From assembly GCA_030390025.1 (NCBI GenBank), contig CM059430.1, positions 75,578,001 to 75,642,000 of the forward strand: a stretch of 64,000 nucleotides of DNA, written 5' to 3'. Within the stretch, counting starts at the first letter, position 1; every line of letters starts with the position of its first letter. Positions 10,805 to 54,700 of the stretch are shown here, piece after piece. A program made the translations under genes and the position numbers. Under the pieces are notes generated by a model. The model searched no databases, was not told where the DNA came from, and worked only from the letters and a program-made list of their open reading frames with translations. The stretch comes from Squalus acanthias (taxonomy: Eukaryota).

Positions 10805-10850
10805 ATGTTTGTGTGTCAGTTCATATGGGCCTTGGGGATTATTTACGAAG
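10805..10850 (+). CDS. Gene A exon 1: signal peptide MFVCQFIWALGIIYE
   Basis: ATG, hydrophobic leader, phase-1 donor G|GTATTT in frame with the V exon. Confidence 0.8.
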
Positions 10851-11043
10851 GTATTTTCGGTAATAATCGGTCCTGCTTTCTTTTTCCTTTTGTTTCTTCC
10901 AATCAATCTTTCAATCTGTGTGTTCTTATTTCTGTCTATCTATTTATCTAACTATGTCTGTCTATCTATTTAGCGTTCTATCTATGCTTGCCTATGTATA
11001 TTTTGTTTACATTTTATAACTAACGTTTAAAAATATTTTGCAG

Positions 11044-11355
11044 TTGCTCCCGCTACAGTTTCCCAATCCCCTAAACGAACCAGTGTGATGGAAGGTGCAG
11101 ACATTACGTTCCATTGCAACACCAGCTCTGTCCAGGATAATTCAGATGTGAATGTTTGTTGGTGGAGACTTGGCGACAATCACTTTATACAACCAGGTTC
11201 TGACGGCAGAAAACGGTTCTTTTCTTTGAAAAACGGAGAGACTTCTTTCCAGATCCTGAGTGTCCGTGTCGCAGACTCCGGATTCTATTACTGCGGATTG
11301 AGATACACAGGAAACACGACCGTATATGGAACCGGATCGAAGCTTGTTGTGCACG
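11044..11355 (+). CDS. Gene A exon 2: Ig V-set domain with germline-joined J-like motif (VSQSP..ITFHC..VCWWR..DSGFYYC..YGTGSKLVVH)
   Basis: tttgcag acceptor, g|gtaag donor, 312 nt phase 1-1; canonical Cys, Trp, DxGxYYC and GxGxxLxV. Confidence 0.95.
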
Positions 11356-12297
11356 GTAAGCGACCTCGGAGAGAGTTGCGGCCGCTCCTATTGTAGGAAC
11401 GCTATACCAAAATAACAGAAATTACAAAACCAGACGGAGCAGCCATCTTATGAGGTTTCCTTTAGTCGACCTCTTGTACATGTGTATTAGGATATTTACA
11501 CTGCAGATATAATTGAAGTGCTTTAATTATATAGAGTTAAGTAGATGGTATCATGAATGGTTTTGATTATTTAACGCATTTATCCATGACGTTAGTTTAT
11601 GTATGATGATTGGGGAACATTATTTAAAATCAGATCTGAAGTCGTATCGCGGTTATCACCCAGAATGTTGTTTTATTTTCTATTCATATGTGTAAGATAA
11701 GTATCCATGTCACTTTGCAGAAGAGGGGTCTGAAGCCAAGAGCGCGGGTTGTGGTAGCAAGCACGATATAGGTGACTGTCCGCAAGGACAGAGAACAAAT
11801 GAGTTTCTACAAGATGGTGCTCCGGCCACACCTTAATTACTTTGCACAACTATATCACCAAACTACAGTGACGATGCACAAGCATTGGACGCAGTGTCGA
11901 AAATGAAAACTAGCTTGAGGAACCGGAGTGAGTTCCAGACCTTGAGGAGCCTGTGCTTGTTTACTTTGGAGCGCACAAGGCGCATTGGAGATTGGATTCT
12001 AGTACTCGAGATTATTAAGAGGATAGATAGCTGGAGTTTGCCCCGAAGACGGCAAACAGAGGATAGTGGCTGAAACTTGAGAGAGGGAGCCGCCAGAGAG
12101 TTTAGATTGAACAACTTTTCGCAGAAAATTGTGAATATGTGAAACCGACTGTCAAGTGGACGCAGAATACGTGAAAAATGCTAAGGGAAAATTGAATCGA
12201 TATTTGACGGAGTGAACAGATGTGAGGTTTTAGATTTTGGGAATGGCCAGCTGGACTGCAGAGTATTTTCCGATTCTGCATTGCAGATGAAATTATT

Positions 12298-13037
12298 GGG
12301 CCGAAAATTGATCCCGGGACGCGAGAGTACGCACTGCGTACTCTCGCGTATTCCCACTCCAATTGCCGGTTTTCTGCATGCCCTGCGCATGCGCTGAAAA
12401 CCGGCAATTGCTCTTCTGAAAAGGGGGCGGGTCCTGGGTGCATCGCGTGCGCGCTACAGGCTGCGCGCACGCTGTGCACTTCATGCTTTGGACGCGCAGG
12501 TAAGTAGGGAAGATTTTGGAAATGTAAAAAGGAGGAGTAAGACCCGCTTTTAAGAAGGTAAGTAGTGAATTAAGTATTTTTTTGAATTTTTTTTTACAGG
12601 TATATCTTTTTTAGAGACTTTAAAGACAGGTAAGTTTATTTTATAACTTTTTAAAAGATTTTAAATTTTTTCAAAAATTTAATTTTTTATTTAAAATGGT
12701 TAATTTAATTAACTATACTTATTTTATTAATGTGATGGTTTTTTTTTATTTAATTGAGGTTTAGCTGTTATTTTGGGCGGGTGTAAGATTCATAGATTTC
12801 ACAACAGGTCTGTGAAACTTATGAATGGAAGATGGTGTGCTGCCATTGGCTCTAACTGAGTCACGTGATCCCACAGCTCGCACGAATTCACTACGCCGCT
12901 GGGATACGCAAGCCCAGCACAGCTGATGTCTGGAACATCAAGTTCGTGCGAGCTGGATCTGAAAAAGCACAAGCGAGGTGAGACTTCGCGGGGAAGGCTT
13001 ACCCCCGCTGGAACAGAGCGAGATCAATTTCTGGGCC
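12298..13037. mobile_element. Harbinger-type MITE in gene A intron 2
   Basis: TIRs gggccgaaaattgatcccg / cgagatcaatttctgggcc, flanks att/gtt; related in reverse orientation to 34181-34926. Confidence 0.75.
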
Positions 13038-14355
13038 GTTATTGTGTATTCTAAAACTTTTGTGACAATGAAGGCGATATTCTCTAACTTAATAGACTCA
13101 TAGAACCTTAAAGCACAGAAACAGACCATCGTGCCTGAGCCGGCTCTGTGAAAATGCTCTCCAATTAGTTCCACTGCCCTGCAAAGTTTCCCTTTTCAAG
13201 AATATATTGAATTCCCTTTTGAAAGTTACTATTGAATCTGCTTCCACCACCCTGCCAGACAGTGCATTCCAGATCACAACAAAAAATGCGAAAATTATGA
13301 TTGCAAGCACAGCAGAATATAAGAAATTTGGTTCTCTTGTGCGAGTAGATTCTACAGCAAATGTTGCAGAGATTGAACTGGCTGAAACGGAAACAAATGA
13401 AAGAGAAGGTGGATCAAATCCTGAAACATGGGGAAATTATTTTATTAATTATGTAGAAAAAAGCTCTTCTCCCCTCTGTATTTTGGCCAATAATCTTAAA
13501 TCTGTGCCTTCTTCATGCCGACCCTCCTGCCACTAGAAACAGTCTCTCCCTTACTACCCTATCAAAACCACTCATCATTTTGGACACCTCAATTACATTT
13601 CCTATTTAACCTTCTCTGCATAGATCTACAATCTATAAACATTTGAATAAACTCCATGTAAATATACAATGGGGTCCTCGGGACCCTTTGGTCATTTATG
13701 AAAACTAGATTTGGTACTAGCCCGGAGTTATACAGCATGCGTGTCGAACCCAACTGTGAGGCAGCCTTCTCCAAGGAATCTCACCCGCTTCTCGTTGACT
13801 GAGATCAGATCATAACTCTAGATTTAAATTGTAACTTTAATAGGTACGACTGGGGGCACGCTTGTCAGTAATAATGGGCCGTTATTTGCGACCCCTGCGG
13901 GTGCGTACGCTTGCGAACCGCGTGTGCCCCTGTGATACATAGGCCTCTGTCCGCGCCTACCCGGAGAGGCCCAGGGGCGCATGTCTCCAGAACTCCCGGA
14001 CCACCAGGAAAATTCGAATATTATTGGCAGGTCGCAGACATACTACCGCAAATTTTGTGCCATTGAGCAAAACGCTGCTGAGTTGTAATAAAAATATAAT
14101 TCTTTGCGTGGAATAAGCACAAGCGGCGACAGCCTGAATGTCTAGTCGCACTGAATTGTTTCTCCTGTTACTGCGACAAGGCTCTGAATCATTAGCATAT
14201 TAGTCTAGAAAGTTAAGGGAAGAATCTTATTTCGAATGGTTAAGTAACAAAATGCGAATTGGAATAATCGTATCATATTCAGGAAGACTGGACGCCAAAC
14301 GCGACTAAAATAGCAGAGTCTGGGCAATCAGTGTATTCTTTACCCTCTTCTGCAG

Positions 14356-14664
14356 CTTCCCCAGAACCTGTGAGACTGGTTCCCAAAGTGTCCAGAACCA
14401 ACTCATCTACTCTAACACTTGTGTGTGAAACGGCCGAGTTCTACCCGGAGGCTCTCACCTTCACTTGGTATAAAAATGACACCAACATTGCGACTGGGAT
14501 CAACACCATTAAAAAGCTGAATTCGGAGGGAATGTATGAAGCTTCCAGCAGATTGGAAACGACGCAGCCAGCCCAGAGCGGGGCTATATATACCTGTGTG
14601 GTGTCTCACCTCACACTGCAGAGTCCACCCGTGGCTGTTTACTTTGATTCCAGTTCTAACCCAG
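14356..14664 (+). CDS. Gene A exon 3: Ig C1-set domain (LTLVCETAEFYPEALTFTWYKN..YEASSRL..YTCVVSHLTL)
   Basis: ttctgcag acceptor, g|gtaaga donor, 309 nt phase 1-1; C1 hallmarks CxxxxFYP, W, YxCxVxH. Confidence 0.95.
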
Positions 14665-15128
14665 GTAAGATGCTGACATTTTTACAAATATTATCAGCCA
14701 CTAACCACTTTAAATTGGCTTTATTTGCTCTCAGTCCTTTTAAAGATTGTTTCCATTTGCGGATTTGTAAAGCGGATAAAAGAGGCAAACGGCTCCCATC
14801 AGAGGCAATTTGCGACACAGTCTTCTTAGCTTCAAAGATCATCATTGTCCTGTGACGAAAATCCAAAAATTACATTTTAATCCAATAACGTAAACAATTG
14901 ACGTGCCTGATTCAGTTTAAGGGGAAACAAGCATCAATTAATCTATATTTTATAAATAGAATTATATCAATGTGGACACGTTAACAGTCTCAGTCCTCAT
15001 GCCTGCTATGGAAGCACTGAAAATATAAATCGCACAACTAACATATTGTTCAACTGTCTGGTGGCAATACAGTGCCTACAATGTATTGGAATTTACTATT
15101 ACTTTTATTAGCTTTATTATGATTCTAG

Positions 15129-15245
15129 AAGTTTATGGACACACATCCCTTTACCTATTGATTGTTGGATGTACAGGGAGTGCACTGATATTTCTCGCCC
15201 TCATCACCGTCCTTGGGAGCAGTCGCCAACTCAGTGACTGTAAAG
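15129..15245 (+). CDS. Gene A exon 4: transmembrane (EVYGHTSLYLLIVGCTGSALIFLALITVLGSSRQLSDCK)
   Basis: ttctag acceptor, g|gtaag donor, 117 nt, ~22-residue uncharged hydrophobic segment. Confidence 0.88.
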
Positions 15246-15841
15246 GTAAGGAGCCACCTATGTAGCTTCACTGTGATAATTCTGTAATAAAGAGGGAACA
15301 AGATGACGGCGTGCAGATGTGTGAGCGTTAAAGGTCGTACAGAAATGAAATTCTATTGATATGTTGAACAATTGTATTTGGTTGCAGGATCTGAAATGCA
15401 GTCAACATATCTGATAAAAGAACACCGATTTTTGCATTTATTGGTGGTGTTTTCTAGTTTTGAATCAGTGATTCCCTCTGATCCCTGAAAGCATTTCAGG
15501 AACTTTACCACTAGATTGTTCAGCCAAGGGGGCAAGAGGGGAGAGTTGCGATTACTTTTTCAAAACTTTTCATGAGCTATGATCCTGAAGGTGTTTTTGG
15601 ATGAGATTTCGGAGATTCACTCGCTGATGTCTGGTCAGAGTTTAACGTTGTATTTCACTAGGCGCCCGCGGAAATGTAGAGGGGCCTCGCCATGTGGAAG
15701 AACGGGTGCGTTTCTCTCCTACATTTTTGAAAATGTTTGAACTTTAAAAAAAATGTGATCCTAAACTGTGCATATTTCAAATGTACGCATTACAAGATTA
15801 CTCCTTATATTGTTGGTAAATGTTTGTGTTCATGTCCACGG

Positions 15842-15888
15842 AGGGCCACCGTAAAAAAATCAACAAATCATCATCAGTCCCAGCCAGG
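15842..15888 (+). CDS. Gene A candidate cytoplasmic exon 5 (EGHRKKINKSSSVPAR); acceptor reads GG
   Basis: 47 nt, phase 1-0, GT donor; same phase pattern as 46098-46141. Acceptor is tccacGG rather than tccacAG. Confidence 0.45.
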
Positions 15889-16044
15889 GTAAAACATTCC
15901 CAGCCAAGTACAGCACTGGGTGCACGCCGGCCGACGACACTGTCCGATGAACCCCCCATCCCAGGTCTAGTGCAGCAGCGTTACTTTCCGCTAGGTTGCG
16001 CTAGTTTTTTTCAGCGCAATTCGCCCGAAAGCAGCCAAGCCACT

Positions 16045-17892
16045 GCAAAAATTCGGGGGCTTTACTCCACCCGTTAGAGTCAAAAAACCACGAGGAGGTC
16101 AGCAGCCGCTCTTTCGTCAGCAGGTGTTGGGCCCCGCAGCGCTGCCGGTAAGATGCATCGCCCTCCAATTTAAAATGAGGAAGCGGTGATGTCAGTCTGC
16201 ATGCAACGCCGAGTTAACGTTACCACCGCGAATTTGGACAGTTTCACTGAGTTCGGTGTTGGGTCCTAAGCTCGGCATGTAAACCCAGCTTGCAAGCAGA
16301 CTCACAGAGGCGCTGTCAGTGCCTCTTAAATGGACACACCCATCTTTCAGGTAAGTTTGCATTTAAGCTTTTGGACTGGATTTTTTGATTTTACTGTAGA
16401 AGTGGTTTGCTGCAATAAATGTTAAAAGATTGTTTAAGTGTGTACGGAGTGCAGACGGAAGGATGCATCCCAGGCAAACGATTTCTGACTCGGATCATCT
16501 GCTGGCGGTCCCAGTGACCACAGCCGCAATTCCTGTTTCAACATTAGTCCCACACCTTACCTTCCCTCTGTTAATGACCATCACAGCGCCTGCTTGGTCA
16601 CAATGCTGAAATAAAAGCCACCAGAATGCAAACCTTCCAATCCAACTTTATACATCTATCCATCCAATATGGCATCAAGAAATCAACTCATCACCCTTAT
16701 GCATCCCCTTAGTGACTGCCTTGTTTGTGCCTTTGCTCATCCTACTGAAGTCACGCAGAGCTACCTCAGTGGTTGTAGCATGACTGGTGGAAGAGAGGGA
16801 CACTGCAAATGGCCTTGCTGGTCCGCCTTCAGGAGGTGGTGTCTGGCAGTGTGAAATCAAGTGATGTTGTTTCTTCTTGTTCTTCTTCATTCTCATGTCC
16901 CTCATCTTGGCCAACCACTGGCTGGGAAGGCTGCATTTCTTGTGTGTGTGAAATGAGGAAGGCACAAGGGTGGAGTTGTTGTGAGGGGAGCGCGGGAAAG
17001 CAAGAGGTGCATGCCAGAAGGAGGATAACGTATGAATATACCAGCACCTTGTATCCTATCAGCCCCACGGCTAGCCAAAAGTCCCTGCTAACAACGGCCT
17101 GCACTGGTTCCTCCAACGGGCTGAGGTGTGGCTAGGAATGGGAGATGTGTCTCATGTTTTGTACGGATTGTTGGTAGGTGAGTGATGGAGGAGGGCGGAT
17201 TCATGCTTTCAGCCGTGTGTGAGGCTAGTGCTGCAGTTGGTAGGAGACGGCTTTTGAAGATGCATTCACTGACCTTGGCCAGTGGTCTGTGGTCCTGCAG
17301 CTTCTTTGGGCATTGTGGACAGATGGTGGGGCGACACTGCTGGCAGTGAACACCTCGGTGAAGTGCTCCCATTTGTGGAGTGCCTCCTAGCCCCTGTTGG
17401 TAGAGGACCTCTCATGTAGTGTTGACACCCTGCACAAAGGTGAGTGCTGCATATGAGACGCTGGGAGCCCCTTCCCTGGCTTGCTGAGCCACTTCTCTTA
17501 ATGCTGAATCACTTTTCCCATTTTTTGAGCTGCAGAAGGGAATTCAGCTTTAAGTGCGGAAGACTTCCATTTGGAATTGCTTTTAAATGTTCTGTTTTTT
17601 GAAAAAGCCAGGAAGAGCTGCAAACTGCATTTTTTCACTTCATTTTAATTTTCATTAGTTTATTTAATATATTGCCCTTTTAATTTCCCACAGTTCCTAG
17701 CGAACTCTGTAGCCTCACTTCCAGAGGCTGTTGGAAGCCAGAACGCTGCACTACCGCCACCAGGAGGGCGTTACACGGTAAAAAAACCCAAGCGCGAAAT
17801 TCCCCCTGGTAGCGCTTCGACCATTTTCAGAGGCCATTAATCCGAGTTGCCGGTCACACCGCTAACTCTCGTGGCGGCCACGAATTTTCCTC
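16045..17892 (-). mobile_element. Non-autonomous Harbinger element with degraded Myb/SANT-like partner-gene remnant
   Basis: Homologous to 44662-45686 in both ends and the internal AQQAREGAPSVS-type segment. Confidence 0.65.
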
Positions 17893-18529
17893 GAGGAATA
17901 TTAAGCACACATTAAGTTCAGCGCAATTCCAGATTTAGCCAATTTTACACTAGCTTAAAAAACACCACAATAGAATCTGCTCCCACCAACAAAACTGGCC
18001 AACCCCTCCCCCCAGATCATTGCGAGCTTCCTCTACTTGCGCCCATTTTAGGGTCTTGGAGGTGGCTCTTAAAATTAGCTTTCTTTTAGGCACAGGGCAC
18101 ATTTTAAAAGCTTTCAAAATTATATATTTTTTAATTTATTACGAAACTGACGACTGTATAACAATGTAACTAGTAAATGGTTCTGCAAAGTTTTTAAAGT
18201 TATTATCAGTCATTTAAAAGCGGGTTACTAACATTTGGTGGACTAGACAATCGGAATAAAAATGCTTATATTTTCTGATAAACACATTGTCAGCTGTATT
18301 ATTAAAGCTGCAACAGGTTACCAGTCTCAAATATATAAATATTAATGCAATTTAAAAAAATTCTAAACCGCTGCCTGTTTTCACTGGTACATGACAGATT
18401 TTAAGTTCGGTGATATGCAAATTATTTGGAGCAGAAACTTGACGAAACAACTCTTCTCAAAACTAACGCATTTATAAGTGAATTTGCGTCCGGTTCATCG
18501 ATAGCGACCAAAGTGGAACCTCTAGAATA

Positions 18530-19000
18530 ACGATCCCTCTACACCAGCCCATCAAATACCTGCAGGGTAGTGCAGTGTGGATAGGAACTCTATAATAAAG
18601 ATCCCTCTACACTGTCACATCAATTACATCCAGGGCAGGAATAGCACGGGGTTAGATACAGAGTAAACCTCCCTATACACTGCCCCATCAGCCACTCCCA
18701 GGGCAGACACAGCACAGGTTAGATACAGAATTTAGCACACTCTACACTGTACCATCAAACACTCCAAGGGCAGGTACAGAACAGGTTAGATACAGAGTAA
18801 AGCTCCCTCACACTGCCCCATCAAACACTCCCAGAGCAGGTACAGAACGGGTTAGATACAGAGTAATGCTCCATCTACACTGCCCCATCAAACACTCCCA
18901 GGGCAGGTACAGCACGGAGTTAGATACAGAGTAAAGCTCCCTCTACACTGTCCCATCAAACACTCCCAGGGCAGGTTCAGCACGGGTTAGATACAGAGTA
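18530..19000. repeat. ~67-bp minisatellite, ~7 copies
   Basis: gttagatacaga recurs at 18651, 18718, 18785, 18851, 18919 and 18986. Confidence 0.95.
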
Positions 19001-19306
19001 TAGCACAATGCAGTTGCTCACTGAGTGCAGAGGAGATTATACTGCTTTTCAGTGTCTAGGATGTATTTGAATTCGAAGGATTGTAATGGTTTTTTATTAC
19101 GCATCACGGTGAATTGTAAGACGCTCTGAACAACCAGAAAAATTGTGCAATTTCAATAATGATATACTGATAGTGATATATTCATTATTCGACTGACATA
19201 TTCGTGATTCTTCAATTTAGCACCAGCCGATCGCACTCTGTTTCATCCAGCGCTCTGCTGACTAATTAAGGTCTTGAGCTAACTGGAAATCGCTTCGATT
19301 TTACAG

Positions 19307-19351
19307 ACCACGGAAGGGACGGTAGAAAATAGACTGCTGCAGATGGCATAA
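19307..19351 (+). CDS. Gene A candidate terminal exon (TTEGTVENRLLQMA*)
   Basis: ttttacag acceptor, phase 0 matching exon 5; AATAAA at 19892. The six-exon model gives ~291 aa. Confidence 0.45.
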   Translation, partial: TTEGTVENRLLQMA

Positions 19352-21183: not shown

Positions 21184-21774
21184 TCAGTGGATATCCCTTG
21201 GCTGAGGTGCGAATAGCTGAGGGAGGTTGGACTGGTGCAGGACGAAAGAAACTTGGCAACTGCCAGGGAATTTGGCGCACACATGCATGATGATCTTCCG
21301 ATGGTTGCAGACCAGCTGCACATTGAGGGAGTGGAAGCCCTTCCGGTTGATAAAGACTACTGGGAGATGATGGGGTCCCCTAATGGACACATGCGTGCAG
21401 TCAATAACGCCCTGCACCCGTGGGAAGCCAGCCAGAGCGACAAAGGCAAACGCCTGCTCATCAAAAATGGCTTCATCAGAGGCAAAGTTGATATAATTGG
21501 CAGACTTGTCAAACAGGGCATCGGTGACCTGTGTGATGCATCTGTGGGCGGCCGACTGCAAGATGCCACAAATGTATGCTGCAGATCCCTGGAAGGAGCC
21601 TGAAGTGAAGAAGCTGAGGATGCTGGTGACATTGACAGCCACAGGTAAGGCATGTCCACCCGCTCCTCTGGGCTGCAGGTCTTGCTCCAGCACTGTGCAA
21701 ATGTCTGAGACGACCTGGCGCGATAGCCTGAGCCTCCTTTGGCACTGTTGCTCAGTCATGTTGAGGAAGCTCAT
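21184..21774 (-). pseudogene. Harbinger (HARBI1-like) DDE transposase fragment
   Basis: [36 protein letters not shown] and KFPGS motifs; truncated. Confidence 0.9.
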
Positions 21775-25990: not shown

Positions 25991-26026
25991 TGTTCTGTTG
26001 GGTGGAATTGTTATGGAGCCGATTGA

Positions 26027-36546: not shown

Positions 36547-36601
36547 ATGTTGGCGATTGCTGTACTTCAGTGCCTCTCTGTTCTGGGATTCATGTTCATA
36601 G
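36547..36601 (+). CDS. Unit B exon 1: signal peptide MLAIAVLQCLSVLGFMFI
   Basis: ATG, hydrophobic leader, phase-1 donor G|GTACCT in frame with the V exon. Confidence 0.85.
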
Positions 36602-36771
36602 GTACCTGTTGTTTCTATACATTGCCTTCTCGCTAAAACGTAGAGTTGCTTAACTTCCATTTGATACAACAGGTTACATTGTCCTTTGCACACATTGCCT
36701 GACTCAAATACCCTCGCGCTTTTTCTGTGTAATATTCTCAATAATTCGATTTTGATTTTCTTTCCCGATAG

Positions 36772-37092
36772 GCTCCTGCGAAACCTCGGTCAAAGTGACT
36801 CAGCTCGCTGAAAGCCCGAGCGGAATCACGGGTACAAGCGTTTCCTTACATTGCTCGAATCCCTTCTTTCAAGACGGACCACAGGTGAAGGTATACTGGT
36901 GGAAACAGTGTGATAATAAATATCTAAGCACTGGACCTGATGACAGAAAAGTAACTGGCTCCAAAACTAAAATCAGCGGCTTCCTTCAGATAATCAATGT
37001 GACTGTCCAGGACTCGGGAGAATATTATTGCACTGTCGTCCATCGAGGCAGAATAATTGGAAACGGAACAGGATCCAATTTAACTGTCTCGG
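36772..37092 (+). CDS. Unit B exon 2: V-set domain with germline J-like motif (VSLHC..VYWWK..DSGEYYC..IGNGTGSNLTVS)
   Basis: gatag acceptor, g|gtcagt donor, 321 nt open. Confidence 0.95.
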
Positions 37093-37848
37093 GTCAGTAT
37101 AAAAGAAGCGGCGAATGAGATGCCTGTAACTGTAATATTACACTGCAAATATATTCAGCGGATCAATCATACTTTGGAATCGTTTGCATTCTACGCTGTT
37201 TCGCACTTCGAAGTATTGTTCAGTTATACTTTGAAGCATTTACTTTGGAACTCAAATTCCAATTGTTTTATATATATTAATTGTACTTATACGGAAGACT
37301 GATAGCGTTACATGTTAATTAGCATTTCAATACTGCCCTATTATTAAAAAAAATCGATTGTGCTTTTATTTGTTTGGATAGTGTAAAACGCGTTATATCG
37401 GAGCAACTGCTCCTTATTCACCCTCCCTATTGTCCTTTCCTGTGAAGTGAATGGAATAAAATATCGGTATAACGATCGGCCCCAAAAAGTTATACTAAAG
37501 TTCAAGATGTTAACAGGTTCATTCTAAGATTTAAGAGCACCATCTGTACGTCATTGTCTGTCTTGGTTTGTGAGGACTAACATTTACTCTTTGAATACAG
37601 ATTGGCGGGCTTACAATATAATGATCCATATATTGAGAGTCTTGAAAGCCGAGTGTACATAACAGTTAGTTATTGTGCACTGCTTGGAACCCGAACGACA
37701 AACCCCATATTTTCATAAAGTTCCTAATCTCCAGTAAGTAAGATGTTGACCAGAACCTGAGTTCTAAAGCCTCTCACGCTTGGGAAATTCGAATTGTGTC
37801 GCCAATTGTTATACTGCAGCCCTTAACCAGGTTTTAAATCGGCGAAAG

Positions 37849-38339
37849 TGTAAGACCACTGTTGGGGAGAAAATAGATTCTCAGAGTCTGTGTAAAGTCC
37901 AAAAACACATAGTTTATTGAAAAAGTACTTTGGATGAAGGAGTCAAAGGTCCCGTGATCTAATGTAACATCCTCTCATCTAACTTTTGGTTATTACAGCT
38001 TATATTCAGTATTTCTGGCTACATGCCATCATACATCGATTTTCGACCAATTATATGGTATTACATTAATCACCTGATTATATTTTGCCTTTATCTATAT
38101 TTATTTGGGAACAATCATAAAAGCAGTAACATCTTGCTGTGCTTTTTGAGCATGGGCTAATCCCACAGTCTACTACTGTATGTTATTTGTGATTGGCACT
38201 GTGCCTACGGCTTCGACCTAATTTTGTAAAAGGTCTCTTTCAATACCTTCATTAAACACCGAACCCTCCCTCAAAAGTCTGTCCGGCAGCTGGAATTATA
38301 TCTATTCCTTATCTTGTTTTGCAAAACCTTCACTGCACA
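37849..38339 (-). mobile_element. Possible solo LTR in the unit B V-C1 intron
   Basis: TGTAAG...CA ends and tttatt (reverse polyA signal) at ~37914; no counterpart in the unit C intron. Confidence 0.35.
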
Positions 38340-38868
38340 TGGTTGTATTGCAAATTGTGTAGAAATTGAATTTAACCATTTCAAATTAACTCTTTCAACC
38401 CCCGTTTAAATGTACAGAATATAAATTCAGCAATCTTTCTCAATTGCATAAGTCATATTATTTGCGTCATCCATTGAGCTACATAGAGGGAGAAGCAGAC
38501 TGTGTTCCTTTCCAATATGAAAAGGGACTGTGGTGTATTTTAATGTCCTGAATTTAGATCAGATACATTGAAGAACAATACTTCCTTGTGCTAATTGTTA
38601 AAGTTGTGAAGATGTTAAAAACCTGAAAAAATAACACCGAATAATAACAGAATAAAAGAGAAAATTACATAGAGCAAATGCAATAGAACATTACACAATT
38701 TATCCACAAATCAAGAGGGAAACATGAACATCAGGTTTAGATTTAGAAGATGCCGTTATCTATGTCCCTACTGATAGCGCACAGCGAAAATGTCCTGTCA
38801 CAAATGCAACGATGGGCTGGTAACCTTGAATGATGTCCAAGTAACATTCTTTTCCTGCACTTTTCTAG

Positions 38869-39180
38869 TTCCGCCAACTCCACTGAAAATTGTCTCTCAG
38901 GAACCTGAAACGGATTCACCTGCGCTCATGTCTGTACTGTGCACAACATCTCCCTTTTACCAGCAGAATATCAGCCTCACCTGGTATAAGGATGGAAGCA
39001 AAATTACACCAAGAATAAATAACATTAATCAACCAAACACCGATGGACTATATGAAGCTTCCAGCCGGTTGGAAGAGACGCAGACTGTCGAGACCGGGAC
39101 CGTTTATACCTGCATGGTGTTTCACAGTACCCTCAAAATTCCAGCCACGGTCACCCACACTGTCAGCTTCAGGAACACAG
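38869..39180 (+). CDS. Unit B exon 3: C1-set domain
   Basis: ttttctag acceptor, g|gtaata donor, 312 nt; C..FY(Q)..WYKDG..YTCMVFH. Read-through stop at 39260. Confidence 0.95.
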
Positions 39181-41014: not shown

Positions 41015-41069
41015 ATGTTGGCGAGTGATGTACTTCAGTGCCTCTCTGTTTTGGGATTCATGTTCACAG
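41015..41069 (+). pseudogene. Unit C exon 1: signal peptide MLASDVLQCLSVLGFMFT
   Basis: Paralogue of 36547-36601 with the same phase-1 donor. Confidence 0.85.
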
Positions 41070-41240
41070 GTACCTGTTGCTTCTATACCTTGCTTTCTCG
41101 CTAAACCGCAGAGCTGCTTATCATCCATTTGATACAACATGTCTTCTTGTCATTTGCAGACTTTGCCTGACTTACTTACTCACGCGCTTTTTCACCTGTA
41201 ATATTCGCACTAATTCGGTTTTGATTTTCTTTTCCGATAG

Positions 41241-41560
41241 GCTCCTGCGAAAATTCGCTCAAAGTGACTCAGCTCCCTGAAGTCGCGAGCAGCAACACGG
41301 GTACAAGCGTTTCCTTTCATTGCTCGATTCCCTTTTTCAAGACGGACCACCGGTGAACGTGTACTGGTGGAAACAGCGTGATAATAAATATCTAAGCACT
41401 GGACCTGATGACAGAAAAGTAACTGGCTCCAAAACTAAATTCAGCGGCTTCCTTCAGATAATCAATGTGACTTTCCAGGACTCGGGAGAATATTATTGCA
41501 CTGTCGCCCATCGGGGCAGAATAGTTGGAAACGGAACGGGATCCAATTTAACTGTCTGGG
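41241..41560 (+). pseudogene. Unit C exon 2: V-set domain with a 1-nt deletion at ~41333-41337
   Basis: 320 nt vs 321 nt in unit B; cccTTTTTcaa vs cccTTCTTTcaa; splice sites intact. Confidence 0.9.
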
Positions 41561-42541
41561 GTAAGTATAAAAGAAGCGGCGAATGAGATCCATGTGACTG
41601 TATTATTTCACGATTCCAAGAAATTCTCTATTGTGCTTTGTAGGATTCACAATGCAACTTAAATTCCAGTCATTTTATGTGTATATATTCAAATTGCACT
41701 GTTGACTGCTACTCGTTACATGCTAATTTGTAGTACAATATTTCAGCAATAATAATCAAGACGAGCAGCATCGGATTTACCCCAAGTACACAGTAAGCAA
41801 GTATACAACAAGCGTTTGAGTTTTAAATTGCAGTGTCCGTTAAGGATCTGTATAATGGCTGGCGCGTGTATCCGCCGCTGTAAGCACCGATCTTACCCTA
41901 TTTAATGGATTCTTTTGTCTGCGTTGGTTACGGAGGGAAGACTGTTTATATTGGGACTCAGATTCGCATATTTATAATTTAATTCTCCATAAGTTAAGAT
42001 CTTTGATAGCCAAATTGCTAACGGTTAACGTCCGCACTGTGTAGCTGGAACCTCGGACCCCTTATATTAATCATCATTGCAGCCTCCAGCAAATATGGTT
42101 TAGCACCGGATCTTCGTGCCATAGCCCCTTTCACTTGGGTAAATTATACTTCCTCATCAGATGTTATGCTCAACGGGATGGAATTGGTCCACAGCTGTAC
42201 CGCAAAACAAGCGACAATGAGTCGGCAGCCCGATATACACCACACTCAATGTTCTTTCCCATTAGAAGAGAAAATCGGCGAGCTGTAAAAGAGGCGGCCT
42301 ATTCGCTGCAATCCGGTTTTCGCCTGGCTAAAGCAGTTAAAGTTACCGCCGATATAAATTTGACTTTTATGAAGATGCCGTTTACGACTTAGGTACCAAT
42401 AGCGCACAGTGAACACCAGGCCCCCACCACTACCCCAACCCCCCGCCCACATTGTGCTGTCAGGAATGGGCTGGAAGAAAGACGGTGGATTGGTAACCTT
42501 GAATGATGTCCATGTAACATTATTTTCCTCCATTTTTCCAG

Positions 42542-42853
42542 TTCCGCCATCTCCACTGAAAATTGTCTCTCAGGAACCTGAAAAGGATTCAACTGCGACT
42601 CTGACTCTACTTTGCACAACATCTCCCTTTTACCCGCAGAATATCAGCTTCACTTGGTATAAGGATGGAACCAAAATTACACCAAGAATAAATAACATTA
42701 ATCAACCAAACACCGATGGACTATATGAAGCTTCCAGCCGGTTGGAAGAGACGCAGGCTGTCGAGAGCGAGACCGTTTATACCTGCATGGTGTTTCACAG
42801 TGCCCTCAAAATTCCAGCCACGGTCACCCACATTGTCACCTTCAGGAACACAG
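42542..42853 (+). pseudogene. Unit C exon 3: C1-set domain (open frame)
   Basis: tttccag acceptor, g|gtaata donor, 312 nt; CTTSPFYP..WYKDG..YTCMVFH. Confidence 0.92.
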
Positions 42854-43070
42854 GTAATATTTTAGATAGAATCATAGAAACTTACAGCACAGAAAGAGAC
42901 CATTAGGCCCGGCGTGCCTGTGCGGGCTCTTTGAAAGAGCTGTCCAAGTTAATCCCCACACCAGCTTTTTCTCCATAACTCTGAAAAGTAGTCCTCTTCC
43001 AGTACACGTCCAGTTGTCTTTTGTAAATTCCTACGGAAACTGGTTCCACCAACCTTTCTGGTAATGCCAG

Positions 43071-43179
43071 TTGGAAGAGACGCAGGCTGTCCAGACCGGG
43101 ACCGTTTATACCTGCATGGTGTCTCACAGTACCCGCAAAATTTCAACCACGGCCACCCACATTGTTACCTATCCAGTAG
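43071..43179 (+). pseudogene. 3' half of an additional C1 exon (LEETQAVQTGTVYTCMVSHSTRKISTTATHIVTYPV)
   Basis: Homologous to the end of the C1 exons, with its own g|gtaaga donor; fused directly to CR1-derived intron sequence. Confidence 0.88.
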
Positions 43180-43853
43180 GTAAGATTGTAGATCTCAGTT
43201 ATCCTGCAGACAGAACCGTTGCTGCGATTCTCCATGTTGGACAAACTGTCCTTTCTCACTAGTTGTTCTACTCCGTCTCTTTCACCAAGTTTTACATCCA
43301 TAAAGGTGTAGGAATCCTAGTTGCCTTTGTTCACTTTCAATCAGGTTTCATTCTGTTCAAAGAGCTCTACGATTGCCGCTCCTGGTCTCCTGCCTTATTG
43401 GGCGGCTTCTCCTGCAGTCCTGGTTTCACGGCTCAGATGTGGCACTGACTCTTGGGGCAAGAGCGGGCGGTAACTCCGGCCGACAGGTTGTTGCAGAATC
43501 GCTGCCTCCTGCGTCCCACAATCTGTGCTCACAATCTGCTGGAAACTGTAACTGTATCAATCAGCTATTAGACACAGTACAAAGTGAAAAATTAAACGTG
43601 TCACTTTAAGTCGCAATCTTATTATCAACAAGAAACCAGATAAAATTAGTATCGAAAAAATCTGTTTTTCATAACACTAGACTTTCGTGAAAAAAGTACA
43701 AAATGGCAAAGATTGATTTAAAATGTCTCTGTTTTTTGAGACCACGTGTTTGCTGAGAATGCTTTTCAAACAGGAATCCATTACTTATAGATGTGGTTGT
43801 GTACCAATTTGGACATATCCTTAATATTTATATAATTTTCATTAATATTTTAG

Positions 43854-43966
43854 ATCGGGCCAACAGCTGCCGTGTCTTACTGATTTCAGATGTGTATGGT
43901 TTGGACTGGTATTGCTAATGGTGGCTCTCATTATTGCGAAGCGATGTCAATTAAAGAAAAGTAAAG
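43854..43966 (+). pseudogene. Unit C TM exon with 1-nt deletion (DRANSCRVLLIS/CVWFGLVLLMVALIIAKRCQLKKSK)
   Basis: ttttag acceptor, g|gtaata donor, 113 nt; as written it stops early (..ISDVYGLDWYC*). Confidence 0.85.
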
Positions 43967-46097: not shown

Positions 46098-46141
46098 GAC
46101 CCGAGAACAATGCGGAGACACCAATCCCTGCTGAACAGCCG
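46098..46141 (+). pseudogene. Unit C candidate cytoplasmic exon 5 (GPENNAETPIPAEQP)
   Basis: ttaccag acceptor, gtctgt donor, 44 nt phase 1-0. Confidence 0.45.
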
Positions 46142-47086: not shown

Positions 47087-47167
47087 TTGCTGCAGAGAGA
47101 CGCGGATGCAAAGGCGCCCTCCGATGCAACACCATTGACCAGTTCCAATAAAAACCTCCAGGGATAA
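47087..47167 (+). pseudogene. Unit C candidate terminal exon (LLQRDADAKAPSDATPLTSSNKNLQG*)
   Basis: ttttgtatctcag acceptor, phase 0. Confidence 0.4.
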
Positions 47168-47952: not shown

Positions 47953-48086
47953 ATCCAAAAACAAAATACTGCGGATGCTGGAAATCTGAAATAAAAACAG
48001 AAAATGCTGGAAATACTCAGCAGGTCAGGTAGCTTCTCTCCACAGATGCTGCCTGACCTGCTGAGTATTTCCAGCATTTTCACTTT
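47953..48086. mobile_element. Short Penelope-derived hairpin insertion with 16-bp flanking direct repeat
   Basis: ttaaaccattatacca at 47937-47952 and 48087-48102; perfect 30-bp inverted arms at 48000-48029 / 48052-48081. Confidence 0.85.
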
Positions 48087-48270
48087 TTAAACCATTATAC
48101 CAGTTGTCGACATCCTGGAGACATGTTTGTTGGACAGCTTGGGGAGTTAAGGGTTAACAGTCAAACTTCTTTCCATCTTAAAGCAACAAGCTTTCCAATA
48201 TATAAACAGCATGACTTTGAAGTGTCGTAAGGTGAAAGCACGGCTTGTCTTCTGATATGTAAAGTGCTTG

Positions 48271-51200: not shown

Positions 51201-51621
51201 TGTATAAAGGAGCATGGTTTTGAACAGTTTGTCAGAGTGTACTCGAAAGATACAGAAACTGAATATCCAATCTCTGTTTACAGTTAAAGACCGATCACAT
51301 TTACTGCGTATCGTAATATAGCAAGTATAGGAACATAAAAACAGGAGTAGGCCATTCAGCCCCGCAAGCCTGTTCCACCATTCAATTAGGTCATGGCTGA
51401 CCTGGATCTTAACTTCATCTACCCGCCTTGGTTCCGTTACCCGTAATACATTAGCCTAACCAGGATCTCAATTTTCTCCTCATAACTGTCATTTCTAATC
51501 CCTGGCATCTCGGTGGATCCATTCTGTACGCTCTCCGTATGACTTGAATGCCTGAGCAGAAGTAACGTGCTTATTGTAAACGTCTTGTTGTGAACCAGGG
51601 AAGAAAGGAGGTTCTCTAACA
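48271..51621 (+). mobile_element. Internally deleted LTR retroelement (ERV-like)
   Basis: Diverged direct repeats ~48271-48704 and ~50988-51621 (the latter split by a CR1-tail insertion at ~51320-51520); purine tract gaggggggaa just before the 3' repeat; ggtgagta donor after the 5' repeat; no pol seen. Confidence 0.7.
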
Positions 51622-51706
51622 ACAATGCTTACCCACAAATCGTTTAGAACCAATTGTTTAAATCGTGTAATAATGTTGTTCATAAATATTGTAACAACCT
51701 GATTGT

Positions 51707-54700
51707 GAAACAGGATTTGTTGCTATAGTTTGGTTCCTTCAGTTCATGCAAGATCAGCTGCACAATAAAATATTTCAGAAACTTCAGATTAAAAACCTAA
51801 GCTTGGCGTCAGGAGGTTATTGTTTTCCTATTCATCTCCCCTTCTTTATACATTTGGCGCTGCCCTGCTCTCTGGCCTTACCTTTCATTTGAGAACATCG
51901 GTATCTGCTGACAACACTCCAAACTCATCTCACTGAGAAGTGCAAGTTTTCCAAAACGTGTAAATATCAAAGATCTCAATAAAGAGATCCGGGCGGTGAG
52001 AAACTGATCTCTCCCCACCCTCCACCCCCTGTCCCACGTGGGCTATAGATTTGTCTAAGTTCTGGAGACATGTCGTTCATGTATCCATATACTAACCAAT
52101 GAGCAGTATTGTGAGCGAGATTACCAGACTCTCAGGGATGTTTAATTTCCGTTGCACTATACAAACAGGCAAGATTAGTTCGATGGATGTAATTTGATAT
52201 TCAACAGATTGTAGGGCATCAAGATTTCTGTGGCCTGCCGCTCATTAATCAATCCTAACTGCCGAACAGGGAATAAGAAAGAATGTGGCTGAGAGTAATG
52301 AAGTTGCAAATACTCAATAATGGGTCATATGTATTGTGGACCTGAAATTACGGTGGGAGGCTTCCCACGGGTGAATACCTCTGAACTGCAAGAAGTTGTG
52401 TGACACAAAATCCATACTTACCTGATGGCCCCCGGACATACGAAGACTGGCGCTCCTGGGCCTGCAAGAGTACGCCTGCGTAAAGGCCCATGTATCCCGG
52501 TTGTGCATGCGGTTCGGAACCGTTCTAGGTATCACGTGGGCCGGCCCGACCAATCAAGAACGGGGTTTCCATTATGCTTATGTTGATTCCATTTACGTAC
52601 GGAATCCCCATAAGCACAATAGGAATCACGTAAAAATTACATTTTCACACAACCTAAGTAAAACTAAATTTTCACTCGTTTAAAATTAATTAAAATTCAA
52701 TTTATTTAAACATATAAAACTTTTTTTTTAAATAAATGCAATATTTTATAGCGGCCGAAAATAACCGAAACAAATATTAAACGTTTTTTAATGTTTAAAT
52801 GATTTTTAAAATGTTATTTTAATATTTATTTAAACATGTACACTGGTAAAATAACGAAGAATGCCTGCTTTTACGAGGCGTAAGAGTTTCATGGGCATTT
52901 GTTGGGCAGTAGTGGGGCAAATAGTCCAATATTGTGCCAGCGAATGTCCATTTCCTTCAGATTCATACGATCTGTCAAGCTGAAACTTGACAAGTTCCGG
53001 GTTTTCATGCATGCGCGGTTAACCAGTGGCCTGTAGATAACGCCAGGACAAATTTCATCCCTTAATAATCCGAAGTGAGATAAACCGGGCTTTCGATACA
53101 CTATCGGACAAAATCACAATTAGCCACTGAAATCAACAAGAAAGCAGGATAAAGGCACGGTAATGTAGAAACACATTTTTCAAGCATGAAAACATTAAAC
53201 AAAGGTCAGCACTTTTTAATTTGTTTCTTCAAACTATACCTTAAATGTAAAAGCACTAAAAAAGCAACAATGAATTAAAATGTATCTGATCTTTTAGGTC
53301 ACGATCTTGTTGAAATGTGCAGTGTACTGCCGCATATTTATACATTTCATCTAAATATTGTAAGTGCCGAGATCACCCGTTACTTGCTGATTTCTGCATG
53401 TGCAGGGGGCGGGTCGATTTTACTGGTGTTGGCTCTCATCATTGGGAGGCGATGTCACTTAAGGAAAAATAAAGATAAATTGGCCCAAAGTATGCCGTCG
53501 GTATGATGGTGAACTGGCAGTGTTCGCCGTCATTCCGCCTTTAAAACTGACCGCAACTTCTGGATTTGGCACGTGCGCAGGCGGAAATACCGAAGTTGCG
53601 GTCAGTCATTGACAGCTCCCACACAGGCTACGCTGTGCCCACCCCCTCAACAGACCCAGCAATCCTTTTTTTCAGCCAAATCAGGGAAATTCATAAAAAG
53701 TTCGGCTCTTCTGCAGTAACTATGCTCTTAATTTCCCACTGAAAGTTAAACCCAATGGGATTAGGTGAAACTGGGGTTTTGACTGCATTATTACTGCTAA
53801 ACAAATGTTAAAGGACACTAAAACTAGTTTTCATTTTGTATAATATGAAATTATTCCATTTTAATATAAAATGAAAGCTTAAAAATATTTCAAAAATTGT
53901 TTTGTAAAGTTTCTCCATCTTTATTTCAGGTTTTCAATTCACCATCTGAGAGCCCCAATCTTTGTTTTCCTCCCTCTAACTATTTTTTTAAAGTTAGAAT
54001 TTTAAGAGCTTACTCACTTCCTTCTTCGCTGTCTGAGAATTATGTGTTTTCATTGGCTGCTCAGACAGCTAGTAGACCTTACAGCATTTCGCACAAGGGG
54101 AACCCCACTACAGTTCATTGATTTTAATTGCACGATGGGAACCTCGAAGTTCTCGACACATGGATTGCAATATCCTTGTGTGAAGCGTATTCGGGGCCAG
54201 CAGCGAATGCCTTCACTTCACTGCTGACCACAAATTAAGGAATTATTTATTATTTCTACTAAAGTAAGCACACATTTCAAAACTGGAGCTGGAACTTCCC
54301 TTTTCCATGTAGAGAGAAAGTTAGGTGATTGTAAATGAACATGTTTTCATCCTAAATTATTTCAAATGTAAGGATATACATAAGAGCATTTTCATCTATT
54401 AAATGCCATAATTGGCCCCATTTTACTCTGTCGCTCTAAAGATACATACAGAATTAGTGCAGAGTGAGTGCAGCACTTACACAACACACACATGGAAACA
54501 TTTTTCAATATCTGTGACAGTCGGTCAGAGGCATCCGAATCACAAGTCACCTGTGGATTGTGAAACAAGGTGTTGTTTAAAAGATACCATCAGCTGCAGT
54601 GAATAGTAAAAAGAAATCTGCTTTAACCTGTTGGACCCAGCGTATGTTGCGACCTCATAGCAACGTAGTCTATAATTCTGTACCCATTAACTGACACTAA

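Follow-up and report, generated by a model that had tools for sequence, protein, structure and literature searches.

A germline-joined VJ-C1 gene cluster of the spiny dogfish, Squalus acanthias, probably encodes members of a membrane protein family of cartilaginous fish

Non-rearranging genes that combine a VJ exon with C1 domains are the main clues to the target of the RAG transposon. In sharks, discussion of the pre-RAG receptor has so far rested on UrIg, UrIg2 and NKp30. NKp30 and PRARP consist of a V domain only and have no C domain. The NITRs belong to ray-finned fish, and their second domain is of an intermediate type, not C1. To our knowledge, the natural-killer-type receptors of cartilaginous fish are poorly known. 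UrIg has three C domains and is secreted, and UrIg2 has nine to eleven C domains (PMC12227049, sections 4 and 7). In the lambda light chains of cartilaginous fish, V and J are joined in the germline entirely (PMC12227049, Discussion). A two-domain VJ-C1 precursor has been predicted, with no living example named (PMC12227049, Fig. 2 legend).

We analysed a stretch of 64,000 nucleotides of S. acanthias DNA (GCA_030390025.1, contig CM059430.1, positions 75,578,001 to 75,642,000), referred to as the window. Its + strand carries three units, A, B and C, each with a split leader, a VJ exon and a C1 exon. Their genes probably belong to a large family of germline-encoded, non-rearranging type I membrane proteins that appears to be confined to cartilaginous fish and would serve innate recognition. 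By state, the units are one intact gene (A), one gene without an anchor of its own (B) and one broken copy (C). The features are as follows.

1933-2047, + strand: paralogous TM exon of the preceding repeat unit, 66% protein identity to 53298-53506
10805-10850, + strand: gene A leader exon 1 (MFVCQFIWALGIIYE), ATG, phase-1 donor GTATTT
11044-11355, + strand: gene A VJ exon, phase 1 to phase 1, V-set, VCWWR, J-like YGTGSKLVV
14356-14664, + strand: gene A C1-set exon, phase 1 to phase 1
15129-15245, + strand: gene A stalk/transmembrane exon, phase 1 to phase 1
15662-15705, + strand: gene A cytoplasmic exon 1, phase 1 to phase 0, with fitting splice sites and phases
19307-19351, + strand: gene A last cytoplasmic exon (TTEGTVENRLLQMA, then the stop), phase-0 acceptor
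36547-36601, + strand: gene B leader exon 1, ATG, phase-1 donor
36772-37092, + strand: gene B VJ exon, open, VYWWK, IGNGTGSNLTV
38869-39180, + strand: gene B C1-set exon, open
41015-41069, + strand: unit C leader exon 1, ATG, phase-1 donor
41241-41560, + strand: unit C VJ exon, 320 bases against 321 in B, VGNGTGSNLTV
42542-42853, + strand: unit C C1-set exon, open, 84% protein identity to B
43068-43179, + strand: 3' half of a C1 exon, 24/35 residues identical to the C1 of B
43854-43966, + strand: unit C TM exon, 'R-C-V-W-F-G' type, with a change of frame inside
51707-56406, no strand assigned: repeat segment, 85-87% identical to window 1-4810
53298-53506, + strand: terminal stalk/TM exon, 'TRYLLISACAGGG' type, phase-1 acceptor at 53298

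Pfam detected a V-set domain in all three V frames (E 4.7e-10, 1.8e-10 and 5.6e-6) and a C1-set domain in all three C1 frames (E 1.1e-13, 2.9e-12 and 7.6e-15). An AG acceptor and a GT donor in phase 1 border every V and C1 exon, and a split leader exon with an ATG and a phase-1 donor lies 170-195 bases 5' of each V exon. The J-like strand is contained within the V exon and runs unbroken up to the donor, with Y before the G-x-G in A and N in B and C. The V domains share a WW core, and their cysteine-to-cysteine span is short, at 60 residues by manual count. The whole window was scanned on both strands for heptamer/nonamer pairs with spacers of 11-13 or 22-24 bases and up to three mismatches. 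Two weak sites were found, at 6476 and 16582, and neither adjoins a V exon. An earlier note on this DNA had described three such leader/V/C1 units on the + strand with phase-1 domain exons, a half C1, a WW core, a J-like strand inside the V exon and no convincing RSS, all of which we recovered. The exon anatomy, the domains and the lack of an RSS beside the V exons bear out its reading of these as non-rearranging VJ-C1-TM genes of a cartilaginous fish. Its four TM exons in 10805-53506 proved to be three (15129-15245, 43854-43966 and 53298-53506), the fourth lying outside that range at 1933-2047. A search of the window for an ITIM exon found none.

Gene A (10805-19351) is intact and has six exons: leader, VJ, C1, TM and two tail exons. 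Its leader exon most likely ends at 10850, in agreement with the first 15 residues of the orthologues P0002 and P0005. The V domain is 73% identical to P0001 (Heterodontus) over 103 columns, the C1 domain is 82% identical to P0002 (Heptranchias) over 102 columns, and the hydrophobic core of the TM segment contains no charged residue. The tail exons were assigned from weak matches (E 0.013 to 0.45) together with fitting splice phases. By tblastn, cytoplasmic exon 1 weakly matched the tail of P0002 (E 0.45) and P0071 (E 0.013), and the last exon, which has no tyrosine motif, weakly matched the C-terminus of P0002 at 8/12 residues (E 0.33). Gene A belongs to a lineage that is old and conserved and whose tail is short and free of tyrosine. 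The two small cytoplasmic exons were absent from the earlier exon list.

Gene B (36547-39180) has an intact leader, VJ exon and C1 exon; the best relative of its VJ exon is P0016 from Scyliorhinus canicula (57%). It lacks a TM exon of its own, and none was found between its C1 exon and unit C. The sole in-frame anchor open to gene B is the exon at 53298-53506, 14 kb downstream. This exon has lost the usual donor (GAT AAA, compared to G|GT AAA in the copy at 2047) and therefore reads through to a stop. Gene B may splice over unit C to the exon at 53298, which would yield a short-tailed membrane form, or else its product would be secreted. Gene B belongs to a second old lineage; its ectodomain exons are intact, and it has no private anchor.

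Unit C (41015-43966) arose recently as a copy of B and is a broken pseudogene, with a 1-base deletion in its V exon and a frameshift in its TM exon. The V exon was matched by tblastn as two pieces in different frames. The frame that starts at the acceptor ends in a stop, which makes this a pseudo-exon unless a run of T was misread in sequencing. In phase 1 the TM exon has a family-like start (RVLLIS) followed by a stop, and the TM segment lies in another frame, so the exon is frameshifted; its 'R-C-V-W-F-G' type also occurs in the relatives P0021 and P0033. Because one of the frameshifts sits in a run of T, they could be assembly errors. The half C1 exon at 43068-43179 gave no match in Pfam; it has kept its phase-1 donor but has no usable acceptor and is therefore a relic. 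The TM exon at 1933-2047 retains its donor, and a phase-1 acceptor was not found. The match of 51707-56406 to window 1-4810 indicates that the locus is part of a tandem repeat of ~51.7 kb. Collectively, the B/C duplication (90-94% nucleotide identity), the pseudogene, the half exon and the segmental repeat support the proposed evolution by birth and death. The accompanying claim that the family is diversifying was not supported: the dN/dS values between B and C (0.75, 2.3 and 1.75) stem from small counts, with a pseudogene as one partner, and fit relaxed constraint equally well.

All 45 named relatives, which are predicted gene models, are from sharks, rays or chimaeras. In a search with the C1 frame of A, 10 of the 28 scored candidates passed E 0.001; they are 131-326 aa long and come from sharks, a sawfish or the chimaera. 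The V profile matched 1013 proteins at E <= 0.001 among 1.84 billion representatives, and the 20 single-V representatives whose names were looked up were all chondrichthyan. A full-length family profile (8000 scored) gave 25 family matches, again all chondrichthyan, and one non-family match, to dog CD1c (E 0.26). The named members of each species share one chromosome-sized contig. As far as these searches reach, the family appears to be confined to cartilaginous fish.

Family members were defined by a V domain scoring at least 55 bits on a profile of A and B, a C1 domain next to it, WW in strand C and a J-like G-x-G strand. Genes A and B fit this definition by construction, since the profile was built from them; independent support comes from reciprocal matches and from trees in which both join clades with proteins of other species. 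In 107 fetched family proteins, isoforms and fragments included, WW was present in 93, the J-like G-x-G motif in 99, at least one C1 domain in 87, two C1 domains in 2 and a TM segment in 74. An ITIM-like motif was found in the tails of 46 of these 74 and in none of the other 28, and in 12 of 67 members with an anchor, R or K precedes at least 12 hydrophobic residues. Trees of the V and of the C1 domains were concordant and separated A from B/C in well-supported clades, consistent with the two subfamilies suggested earlier. Gene A shares an 8-row clade with Heptranchias, Heterodontus, Mustelus, Scyliorhinus and Pristis, at an SH-aLRT of 99 in the V tree and 97 in the C1 tree, and B and C group with a catshark protein and with skate and ray proteins (SH-aLRT 94 for V, 97 for C1). 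A and B belong to two old lineages, each common to sharks and rays.

The earlier note considered the family possibly not yet characterised. A literature search found no published description of a chondrichthyan VJ-C1-TM family, which agrees with this, but members are already in public annotation as unnamed or misnamed predicted proteins. At least nine automatic names conflict, including lambda-like, SIRP-like, B7H6-like and tapasin-like, so that the family is easily overlooked.

The exon order in each gene of the family is a split leader, a VJ exon with the J-like G strand, a C1-set exon, a stalk/TM exon and small cytoplasmic exons. We propose that its members serve innate recognition at the cell surface and that their signalling designs are paired. 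The ITIM-like tails of many relatives, with one to five tyrosine motifs, would recruit SH2 phosphatases in the way that SIRP-alpha, KIR or NITR tails do. Some short-tailed relatives have Arg or Lys in the membrane segment and could bind an ITAM adaptor. The gene A lineage has neither motif and would thus signal via a partner chain or be a ligand. Since the window has no ITIM exon, this reading of signalling rests on the relatives. Eight sequencing runs were found in which 8-10% of sampled words were present, and none of the eight is on record as RNA. If the signalling designs are correct, the family would be the first candidate paired-receptor system of VJ-C1-TM build in cartilaginous fish.

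Against solved structures, the family profile scored 76 bits with Ig light chains, 69 bits with SIRP-alpha d1-d2 and 61 bits with UrIg2, which leaves the three about equally far from it. These distances do not establish the link to the pre-RAG ancestor that the earlier note had drawn. One conceivable origin is that the family is a side branch of shark Ig light chains, in which a germline-joined lambda cluster acquired exons for a TM segment and a cytoplasmic tail and grew into a family of innate receptors; the VJ-C1 architecture would then be secondary and no relic of a pre-RAG state. Shark lambda clusters do have V and J joined in the germline (PMC12227049), lambda light chains are the best solved matches of the V domain of B alone (E 7e-8), and lambda V-C (76.3 bits) and kappa V-C (76.7 bits) are the top V-C1 units among five alignments to the profile. 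However, SIRP-alpha d1-d2 follows closely at 68.9 bits, and the top single C1 score is that of SIRP-alpha d3 (49.9 bits) and not of a light-chain constant domain. The Phe/Trp of F/W-G-X-G is present in 0/99 J-like motifs, 73 of which have Asn. FR2 reads WWK compared to W-x-Q-Q in the light-chain-like V units compared, which were from Pogona only, and the inter-cysteine span is short. A tree with the family V domains as one clade against seven outside V domains, among them the lambda-like VJ of a lizard and the TCR-alpha V of a frog but no shark light chain, had the better likelihood and was not rejected (p-AU 0.675). We regard an origin from light chains as unlikely.

As candidates for the identity of the window genes, two chain types were set aside by their architecture. 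An Ig light chain defined by V and J segments with an RSS, or by a germline-joined VJ with F-G-X-G, does not match V exons with no RSS beside them and with Y (A) or N (B, C) before the G-x-G, and a secreted two-domain light chain does not match gene A, which runs on into TM and tail exons. A T-cell receptor chain does not match a single VJ exon without an RSS.

The SIRP family was also considered, of which these genes could be the cartilaginous-fish counterpart (co-orthologue) with one C1 domain in place of two. In SIRP-alpha, too, C1 domains follow a V domain that has a J-like strand, and the split between SIRP-alpha and SIRP-beta resembles that between ITIM-tailed and short-tailed family members. 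SIRP-alpha is the 4th-best of all solved chains on the family profile, with d1-d2 aligning co-linearly, and many members have received the name 'tyrosine-protein phosphatase non-receptor type substrate 1-like' or 'signal-regulatory protein beta-1-like' from the NCBI pipeline. These scores are no better than those of light chains, and members carry one C1, not two. A search with the ITIM-rich tail of P0063 (696 candidates, E up to 1) returned P0063 itself and one chimaera paralogue, and no SIRP. According to passages of PMC13262535, SIRPs belong to a group that makes its first appearance in Tetrapoda, which further argues against co-orthology; we consider co-orthology very unlikely. Classification as SIRP was rejected by domain number, with one C1 in the window units and two in 2/107 relatives, and by the tail, for which the search gave chimaera paralogues only (2/696) and for which the window has no ITIM exon. 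No marker gene that would place the locus relative to the SIRP region flanks the genes within the window.

It appears most improbable that these genes form a third branch of UrIg/UrIg2, the non-rearranging antigen-receptor-like genes of sharks. UrIg2 (PDB 9dmx) was the best solved match of the C1 domains of A (E 2.1e-19) and B (E 2e-13) and second among solved matches of the family profile, and a split leader with a single VJ exon is common to both (PMC12227049, section 7). The high UrIg2 totals, however, are sums over three C domains. Single stretches of UrIg2 score 20-27 bits with the window exons and 32-42 bits with the profile, and the N-terminal two thirds of its V domain are unaligned to the profile (0.3 bits). 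UrIg/UrIg2 identity was also rejected by domain number, as each unit has one C1 exon compared to three or nine to eleven. By their single V domain, NKp30 (NCR3) and PRARP were set aside because a C1 exon follows each V exon here; NITR was set aside because the second domain here is C1-set by Pfam. A catfish NITR, the sole one compared, scored 33 bits on the V profile compared to at least 59 for family members.

It is quite doubtful that the two-domain VJ-C1 membrane receptor ancestral to UrIg/UrIg2 and the rearranging antigen receptors has a living descendant in this family. In that case the family would lie outside the Ig, TCR and UrIg branches, and common ancestry rather than an origin from light chains would account for its light-chain-like scores. 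As a large and old family of minimal VJ-C1-TM layout, it would add either a new candidate relative of the antigen-receptor precursor or a clear case of light-chain genes turned innate receptors.

Read as an innate membrane receptor family of cartilaginous fish, these genes share features with each of the known systems. Like NKp30/NCR3, PRARP and the teleost NITRs, the last of which exist in activating and inhibitory forms, they have a non-rearranging V domain with a J-like strand. Like SIRPs, the family combines a V domain whose J-like strand lacks the aromatic residue with a C1-set domain, a TM segment and both putatively inhibitory and short-tailed forms; unlike SIRPs, its members have one C1 domain and no detectable homology in the tail. 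With Ig light chains, including the germline-joined lambda chains of sharks, these genes share the leader, the VJ, the one C1 domain and phase-1 exons, but they differ in having TM and cytoplasmic exons and WW in place of a light-chain-type FR2. UrIg and UrIg2, so far reported from elasmobranchs only, are likewise non-rearranging, with a split leader, a single VJ exon and then C1-type exons, and UrIg2 also has a TM segment (Flajnik et al. 2023, 2025). The V domain of UrIg2 aligns to the family profile over its last strands only, and in contrast to these single genes the family is multigene, with many divergent members and ITIM-tailed forms.

Three receptor units of one common build lie on the + strand of the 64 kb window (N count 0). 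Each begins with a leader exon that combines an ATG and a hydrophobic leader with a phase-1 GT donor, and this exon is followed after ~170-195 bases by a V exon and, beyond an intron of 1-3 kb, by a C1 exon. V and C1 exons alike are phase 1, with an AG acceptor and a GT donor, and Pfam detected V-set in all three V frames and C1-set in all three C1 frames, each above the curated cut-offs. The V exon continues without a break into a J-like strand up to the donor, reading YGTGSKLVV in gene A, IGNGTGSNLTV in gene B and VGNGTGSNLTV in unit C. An RSS scan of both strands for heptamer/nonamer pairs with up to 3 mismatches to the consensus gave only two weak sites in the window, at 6476 and 16582, neither of which adjoins a V exon. 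Since the J-like strand lies within the V exon and no RSS lies beside the V exons, rearrangement is not needed. The splice sites and Pfam matches thus bear out the earlier note's three leader/V/C1 units with phase-1 Ig exons, and the exon reading and two-strand scan its claim of a J-like strand inside the V exon with no convincing RSS. The window's genes were searched by single exons or open frames, and full-length comparisons were made with natural proteins of other species. Among sequencing runs, 8 from 2 studies matched, with 8-10% of the sampled words, and none of the 8 is catalogued as RNA.

Exons of the three receptor units and the further TM exon
10805-10850, +, leader exon of gene A
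11044-11355, +, V exon of gene A
14356-14664, +, C1 exon of gene A
15129-15245, +, stalk/TM exon of gene A; phase 1, fits the C1 donor
15662-15705, +, cytoplasmic exon of gene A, 44 bases; phase 1 to 0; weak match to the tail of the Heptranchias (sevengill shark) orthologue P0002 (E 0.45)
19307-19351, +, last exon of gene A, ends in a stop; weak match to the P0002 tail (E 0.33)
36547-36601, +, leader exon of gene B
36772-37092, +, V exon of gene B
38869-39180, +, C1 exon of gene B
41015-41069, +, leader exon of unit C
41241-41560, +, V exon of unit C
42542-42853, +, C1 exon of unit C
43068-43179, +, half C1 exon (3' part) behind the C1 of unit C
43854-43966, +, TM exon of unit C; read in phase 1, family-like start, then a stop; hydrophobic segment in a different frame
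53298-53506, +, further TM exon; phase-1 acceptor behind a pyrimidine tract, open to a stop

Gene A is a complete gene. Its order of parts, down to the first 15 residues, matches that of the relatives found with its C1 exon. The two small tail exons, which are the least certain parts of the gene, were accepted on the fit of their position, order and splice phases. The tail contains no tyrosine and the membrane segment no charged residue. A motif scan found no ITIM exons in the window, and tblastn of the relatives' tails against the window recovered the two small exons of gene A and, apart from these, nothing above chance level. One open frame, which occurs in each copy of a segmental repeat (3507-3617 and 55100-55300), resembles the ITIM region of one family tail at chance level (E 0.49), with Phe replacing tyrosine; it could represent a decayed tail exon or have no significance.

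In gene B the leader, V and C1 exons are open, and no TM exon lies between its C1 and the start of unit C. The sole in-frame anchor that gene B could use is the TM exon at 53298-53506, 14 kb downstream and across unit C, and splicing to it is a possibility. Its paralogue at 1933-2047 has kept the donor, G|GT AAA, and has no phase-1 acceptor; the exon at 53298-53506 shows GAT AAA at the donor position and therefore reads on for nine codons. Unit C is a copy of gene B, with 90% identity in the region of the leader and V exon and 94% in that of C1. Its V exon is 1 base shorter than that of B, so the acceptor frame stops after 38 codons. With frameshifts in both the V and the TM exon, unit C is thus a pseudogene, unless both are assembly errors. 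B versus C substitution ratios near or above 1 were rejected as evidence of positive selection because they rest on few sites and a pseudogene partner.

The segment 51707-56406 is 85-87% identical to 1-4810, in the same orientation and 51.7 kb apart, and the locus therefore lies within a ~51.7 kb tandem repeat. The receptor cluster seems to expand through tandem duplication of large segments. Each of the two repeat copies contains a TM-type exon of the receptor family. Most of the remaining sequence is debris of CR1-type retrotransposons and Harbinger-type transposons, and no flanking marker gene lies in the window. A nearly full CR1-type element lies at 57404-60815 (+), with a GDSL-lipase/esterase-like domain in one ORF (E 1.3e-12) and a reverse transcriptase in a 608-aa ORF (E 2.1e-30); many decayed CR1 copies occur at other sites of the window. 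A Harbinger/PIF-type transposase fragment (DDE_Tnp_4, E 1.7e-10) was found at 21184-21774 (-), with an 80% identical copy at 61445-61920, near the window end.

The C1-A open frame (domain only) was scored on 28 candidates, of which 10 proteins matched (E 1e-23 to 1e-46); every one of the 10 belongs to Heterodontus, Heptranchias, Pristis, Scyliorhinus, Mustelus or Callorhinchus. Seven are 257-305 aa long, with identity up to 83%. A V profile built from V-A and V-B was scored against 1.84 billion representatives and gave 1013 proteins at E <=0.001 and 194 at <=1e-10. At the top of this list long multi-Ig proteins, which rank high because scores sum over many domains, are mixed with ~100 proteins of 200-450 aa that have one match covering the whole V domain. 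All 20 of the single-V proteins looked up are of shark, ray or chimaera origin. With a local profile, family V domains scored at least 59 bits, one protein 50 bits and all others 40 bits or less. A full-length profile of 36 members recovered 25 further or known members among 8000 scored candidates, all chondrichthyan, and its only other match was dog CD1c (E 0.26). The relatives are predicted gene models, and the named members share one chromosome-sized contig per species, catshark, horn shark and sevengill shark among them. Their database names range from 'immunoglobulin lambda-1 light chain-like', 'natural cytotoxicity triggering receptor 3 ligand 1-like' and 'tapasin-related protein-like' to 'tyrosine-protein phosphatase non-receptor type substrate 1-like', 'signal-regulatory protein beta-1-like', 'CD276 antigen homolog', class II beta-chain-like, 'opioid-binding protein/cell adhesion molecule' and 'uncharacterized protein'. 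The conflicting names were assigned automatically, and show only the absence of a curated name. Protein atlas neighbours were generic V/C1 only.

Ten multi-V or outlying V-profile matches were judged not to be family. They comprised a lizard lambda-like VJ repeat, a frog TCR-alpha V array, a catfish NITR, a hypothetical multi-V protein of the characiform fish Prochilodus, multi-VJ proteins of turtle, sturgeon and paddlefish, and two shark/ray multi-VJ proteins on other chromosomes. In the Pogona vitticeps models P0176-P0183, named lambda light chain, two to four V domains follow one another in tandem, each with a J-like strand (FGQGS..T.TG) at its end, and the three models examined have no C domain; the Pogona models may represent either fused gene models or repeats of a non-rearranging VJ.

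Separate V and C1 trees were computed by a quick IQ-TREE search with SH-aLRT support on ~100 columns, the V tree with seven distant outgroups and the C1 tree without an outgroup. The deep forks have no resolution because the columns are few; V and C1 give concordant trees. Gene A joins one or two proteins from each of Heptranchias, Heterodontus, Mustelus, Scyliorhinus and Pristis in an eight-member clade (support 99 in the V tree, 97 in the C1 tree), and the ITIM motif is absent from all proteins of this clade. Gene B pairs with unit C (95 and 97 in the V and C1 trees), a recent local duplication, and the pair groups with a catshark protein and skate/ray proteins (94 and 97). The two subfamilies proposed earlier, A versus B/C, are thus recovered in both trees. 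Since sharks and batoids occur in both lineages, these are older than the shark-batoid split. The B lineage contains both TM types of the window, R-C-V-W-F-G with short tails (predicted proteins P0021 and P0033) and R-Y-L-L-I-S with ITIM tails (P0040 and P0042). In the free V tree, frog TCR-alpha V and lizard lambda-like VJ sit on long branches inside a part of the family that the tree does not resolve. Constraining the family to one clade raised the likelihood by 7.6 units and was not rejected (AU p 0.675, no shark Ig/TCR in the test), a result that does not prove a family clade.

Features were counted in 107 fetched proteins, isoforms and fragments included, each with one V hit of at least 55 bits. 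The V domain carries WW in 93 of them and W plus another residue in the other 14. A J-like G-x-G strand is present in 99/107; the residue preceding its first Gly is Asn in 73 and never Phe or Trp in these 99. An N-G-S/T glycosylation sequon occupies this site in 67/107. At least one C1 domain was found in 87/107 (two in 2/107) and a TM segment in 74/107. Of the TM-bearing members, 46 have at least one ITIM-like tail motif (up to five) and 28 have none, and Arg or Lys stands ahead of at least 12 hydrophobic residues in 12 of 67 anchor-bearing members. Some models (P0038, P0094, P0105, P0116, P0131 and P0142) pass directly from the VJ domain to TM and ITIM tail without C1; natural splicing past the phase-1 C1 exon may account for them, or else model or annotation errors.

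The product is a type I membrane protein encoded in the germline, in which an antigen-receptor-type V domain at the N terminus is joined to one C1, a short stalk and one TM. We consider it probable that these proteins form a chondrichthyan family of non-rearranging VJ-C1-TM proteins. Such a protein may act as a surface recognition receptor, and the family could form a paired-receptor system in which ITIM tails would inhibit and short-tailed members, some with a membrane Arg, would activate via an adaptor. The conserved Asn sequon at the J-motif aromatic site would place a glycan on the face by which Ig/TCR V domains pair; if so, pairing as in Ig may not occur between family V domains. The gene A lineage, conserved and without a signalling motif, may act via a partner or as a ligand.

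Against solved structures, V-B matched lambda light chains first (E 7e-8, V stretch 27 bits), and V-A matched DCC, titin, scFv, light chains and TCR-alpha (E ~1e-7 to 1e-4). The 36-member family profile was also scored against solved chains.

Scores of the family profile against solved chains (bits)
Kappa light chain, V-C stretch: 76.7
Lambda light chain, V-C stretch: 76.3
SIRP-alpha d1-d2: 68.9
UrIg2, last V strands and C1: 60.6
SIRP-alpha d3, best single C1 domain: 49.9
Antibody heavy chain, VH-CH1: 47-52
UrIg2 C3: 41.8

These scores thus place the family as a V-C1 chain of the antigen-receptor/SIRP kind, and by this measure it is about equally far from light chains, SIRP-alpha, UrIg2 and the antibody heavy chain. 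An origin from light chains has the top-scoring chains on its side and stays under consideration because shark lambda is wholly germline-joined, according to PMC12227049; we regard it as rather unlikely. A relationship to SIRP would agree with the d1-d2 score, whereas the SIRP family is placed in a tetrapod-level group in PMC13262535, and the ITIM-rich tail of a chimaera member used as query found neither SIRP nor any other family; we hold it to be improbable. That the family is a UrIg branch, as the first rank of UrIg2 (PDB 9dmx) for both C1-A and C1-B might suggest, appears more doubtful still, and UrIg2 ranked first because three domains were summed, at 20-27 bits each for C1-A and 9-26 for C1-B. 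The rest of the weight goes to a separate old lineage.

A full-text search, in which subscription journals are thinly covered, found no literature on a VJ-C1-TM family of cartilaginous fish, and within that coverage the family appears not to be in print. Of VJ genes located in the MHC or close to it, Verissimo et al. 2023 (PMC10751288) list NKp30, PRARP and UrIg as known. The scheme in PMC12227049 (Flajnik et al. 2025) predicts a two-domain VJ-C1 precursor, and the sections of that paper considered name no living two-domain VJ-C1 gene. They describe UrIg as a VJ domain with three C domains, secreted, and UrIg2 as a VJ domain with nine to eleven C domains and a TM, whereas the window's units have one C1 exon each.
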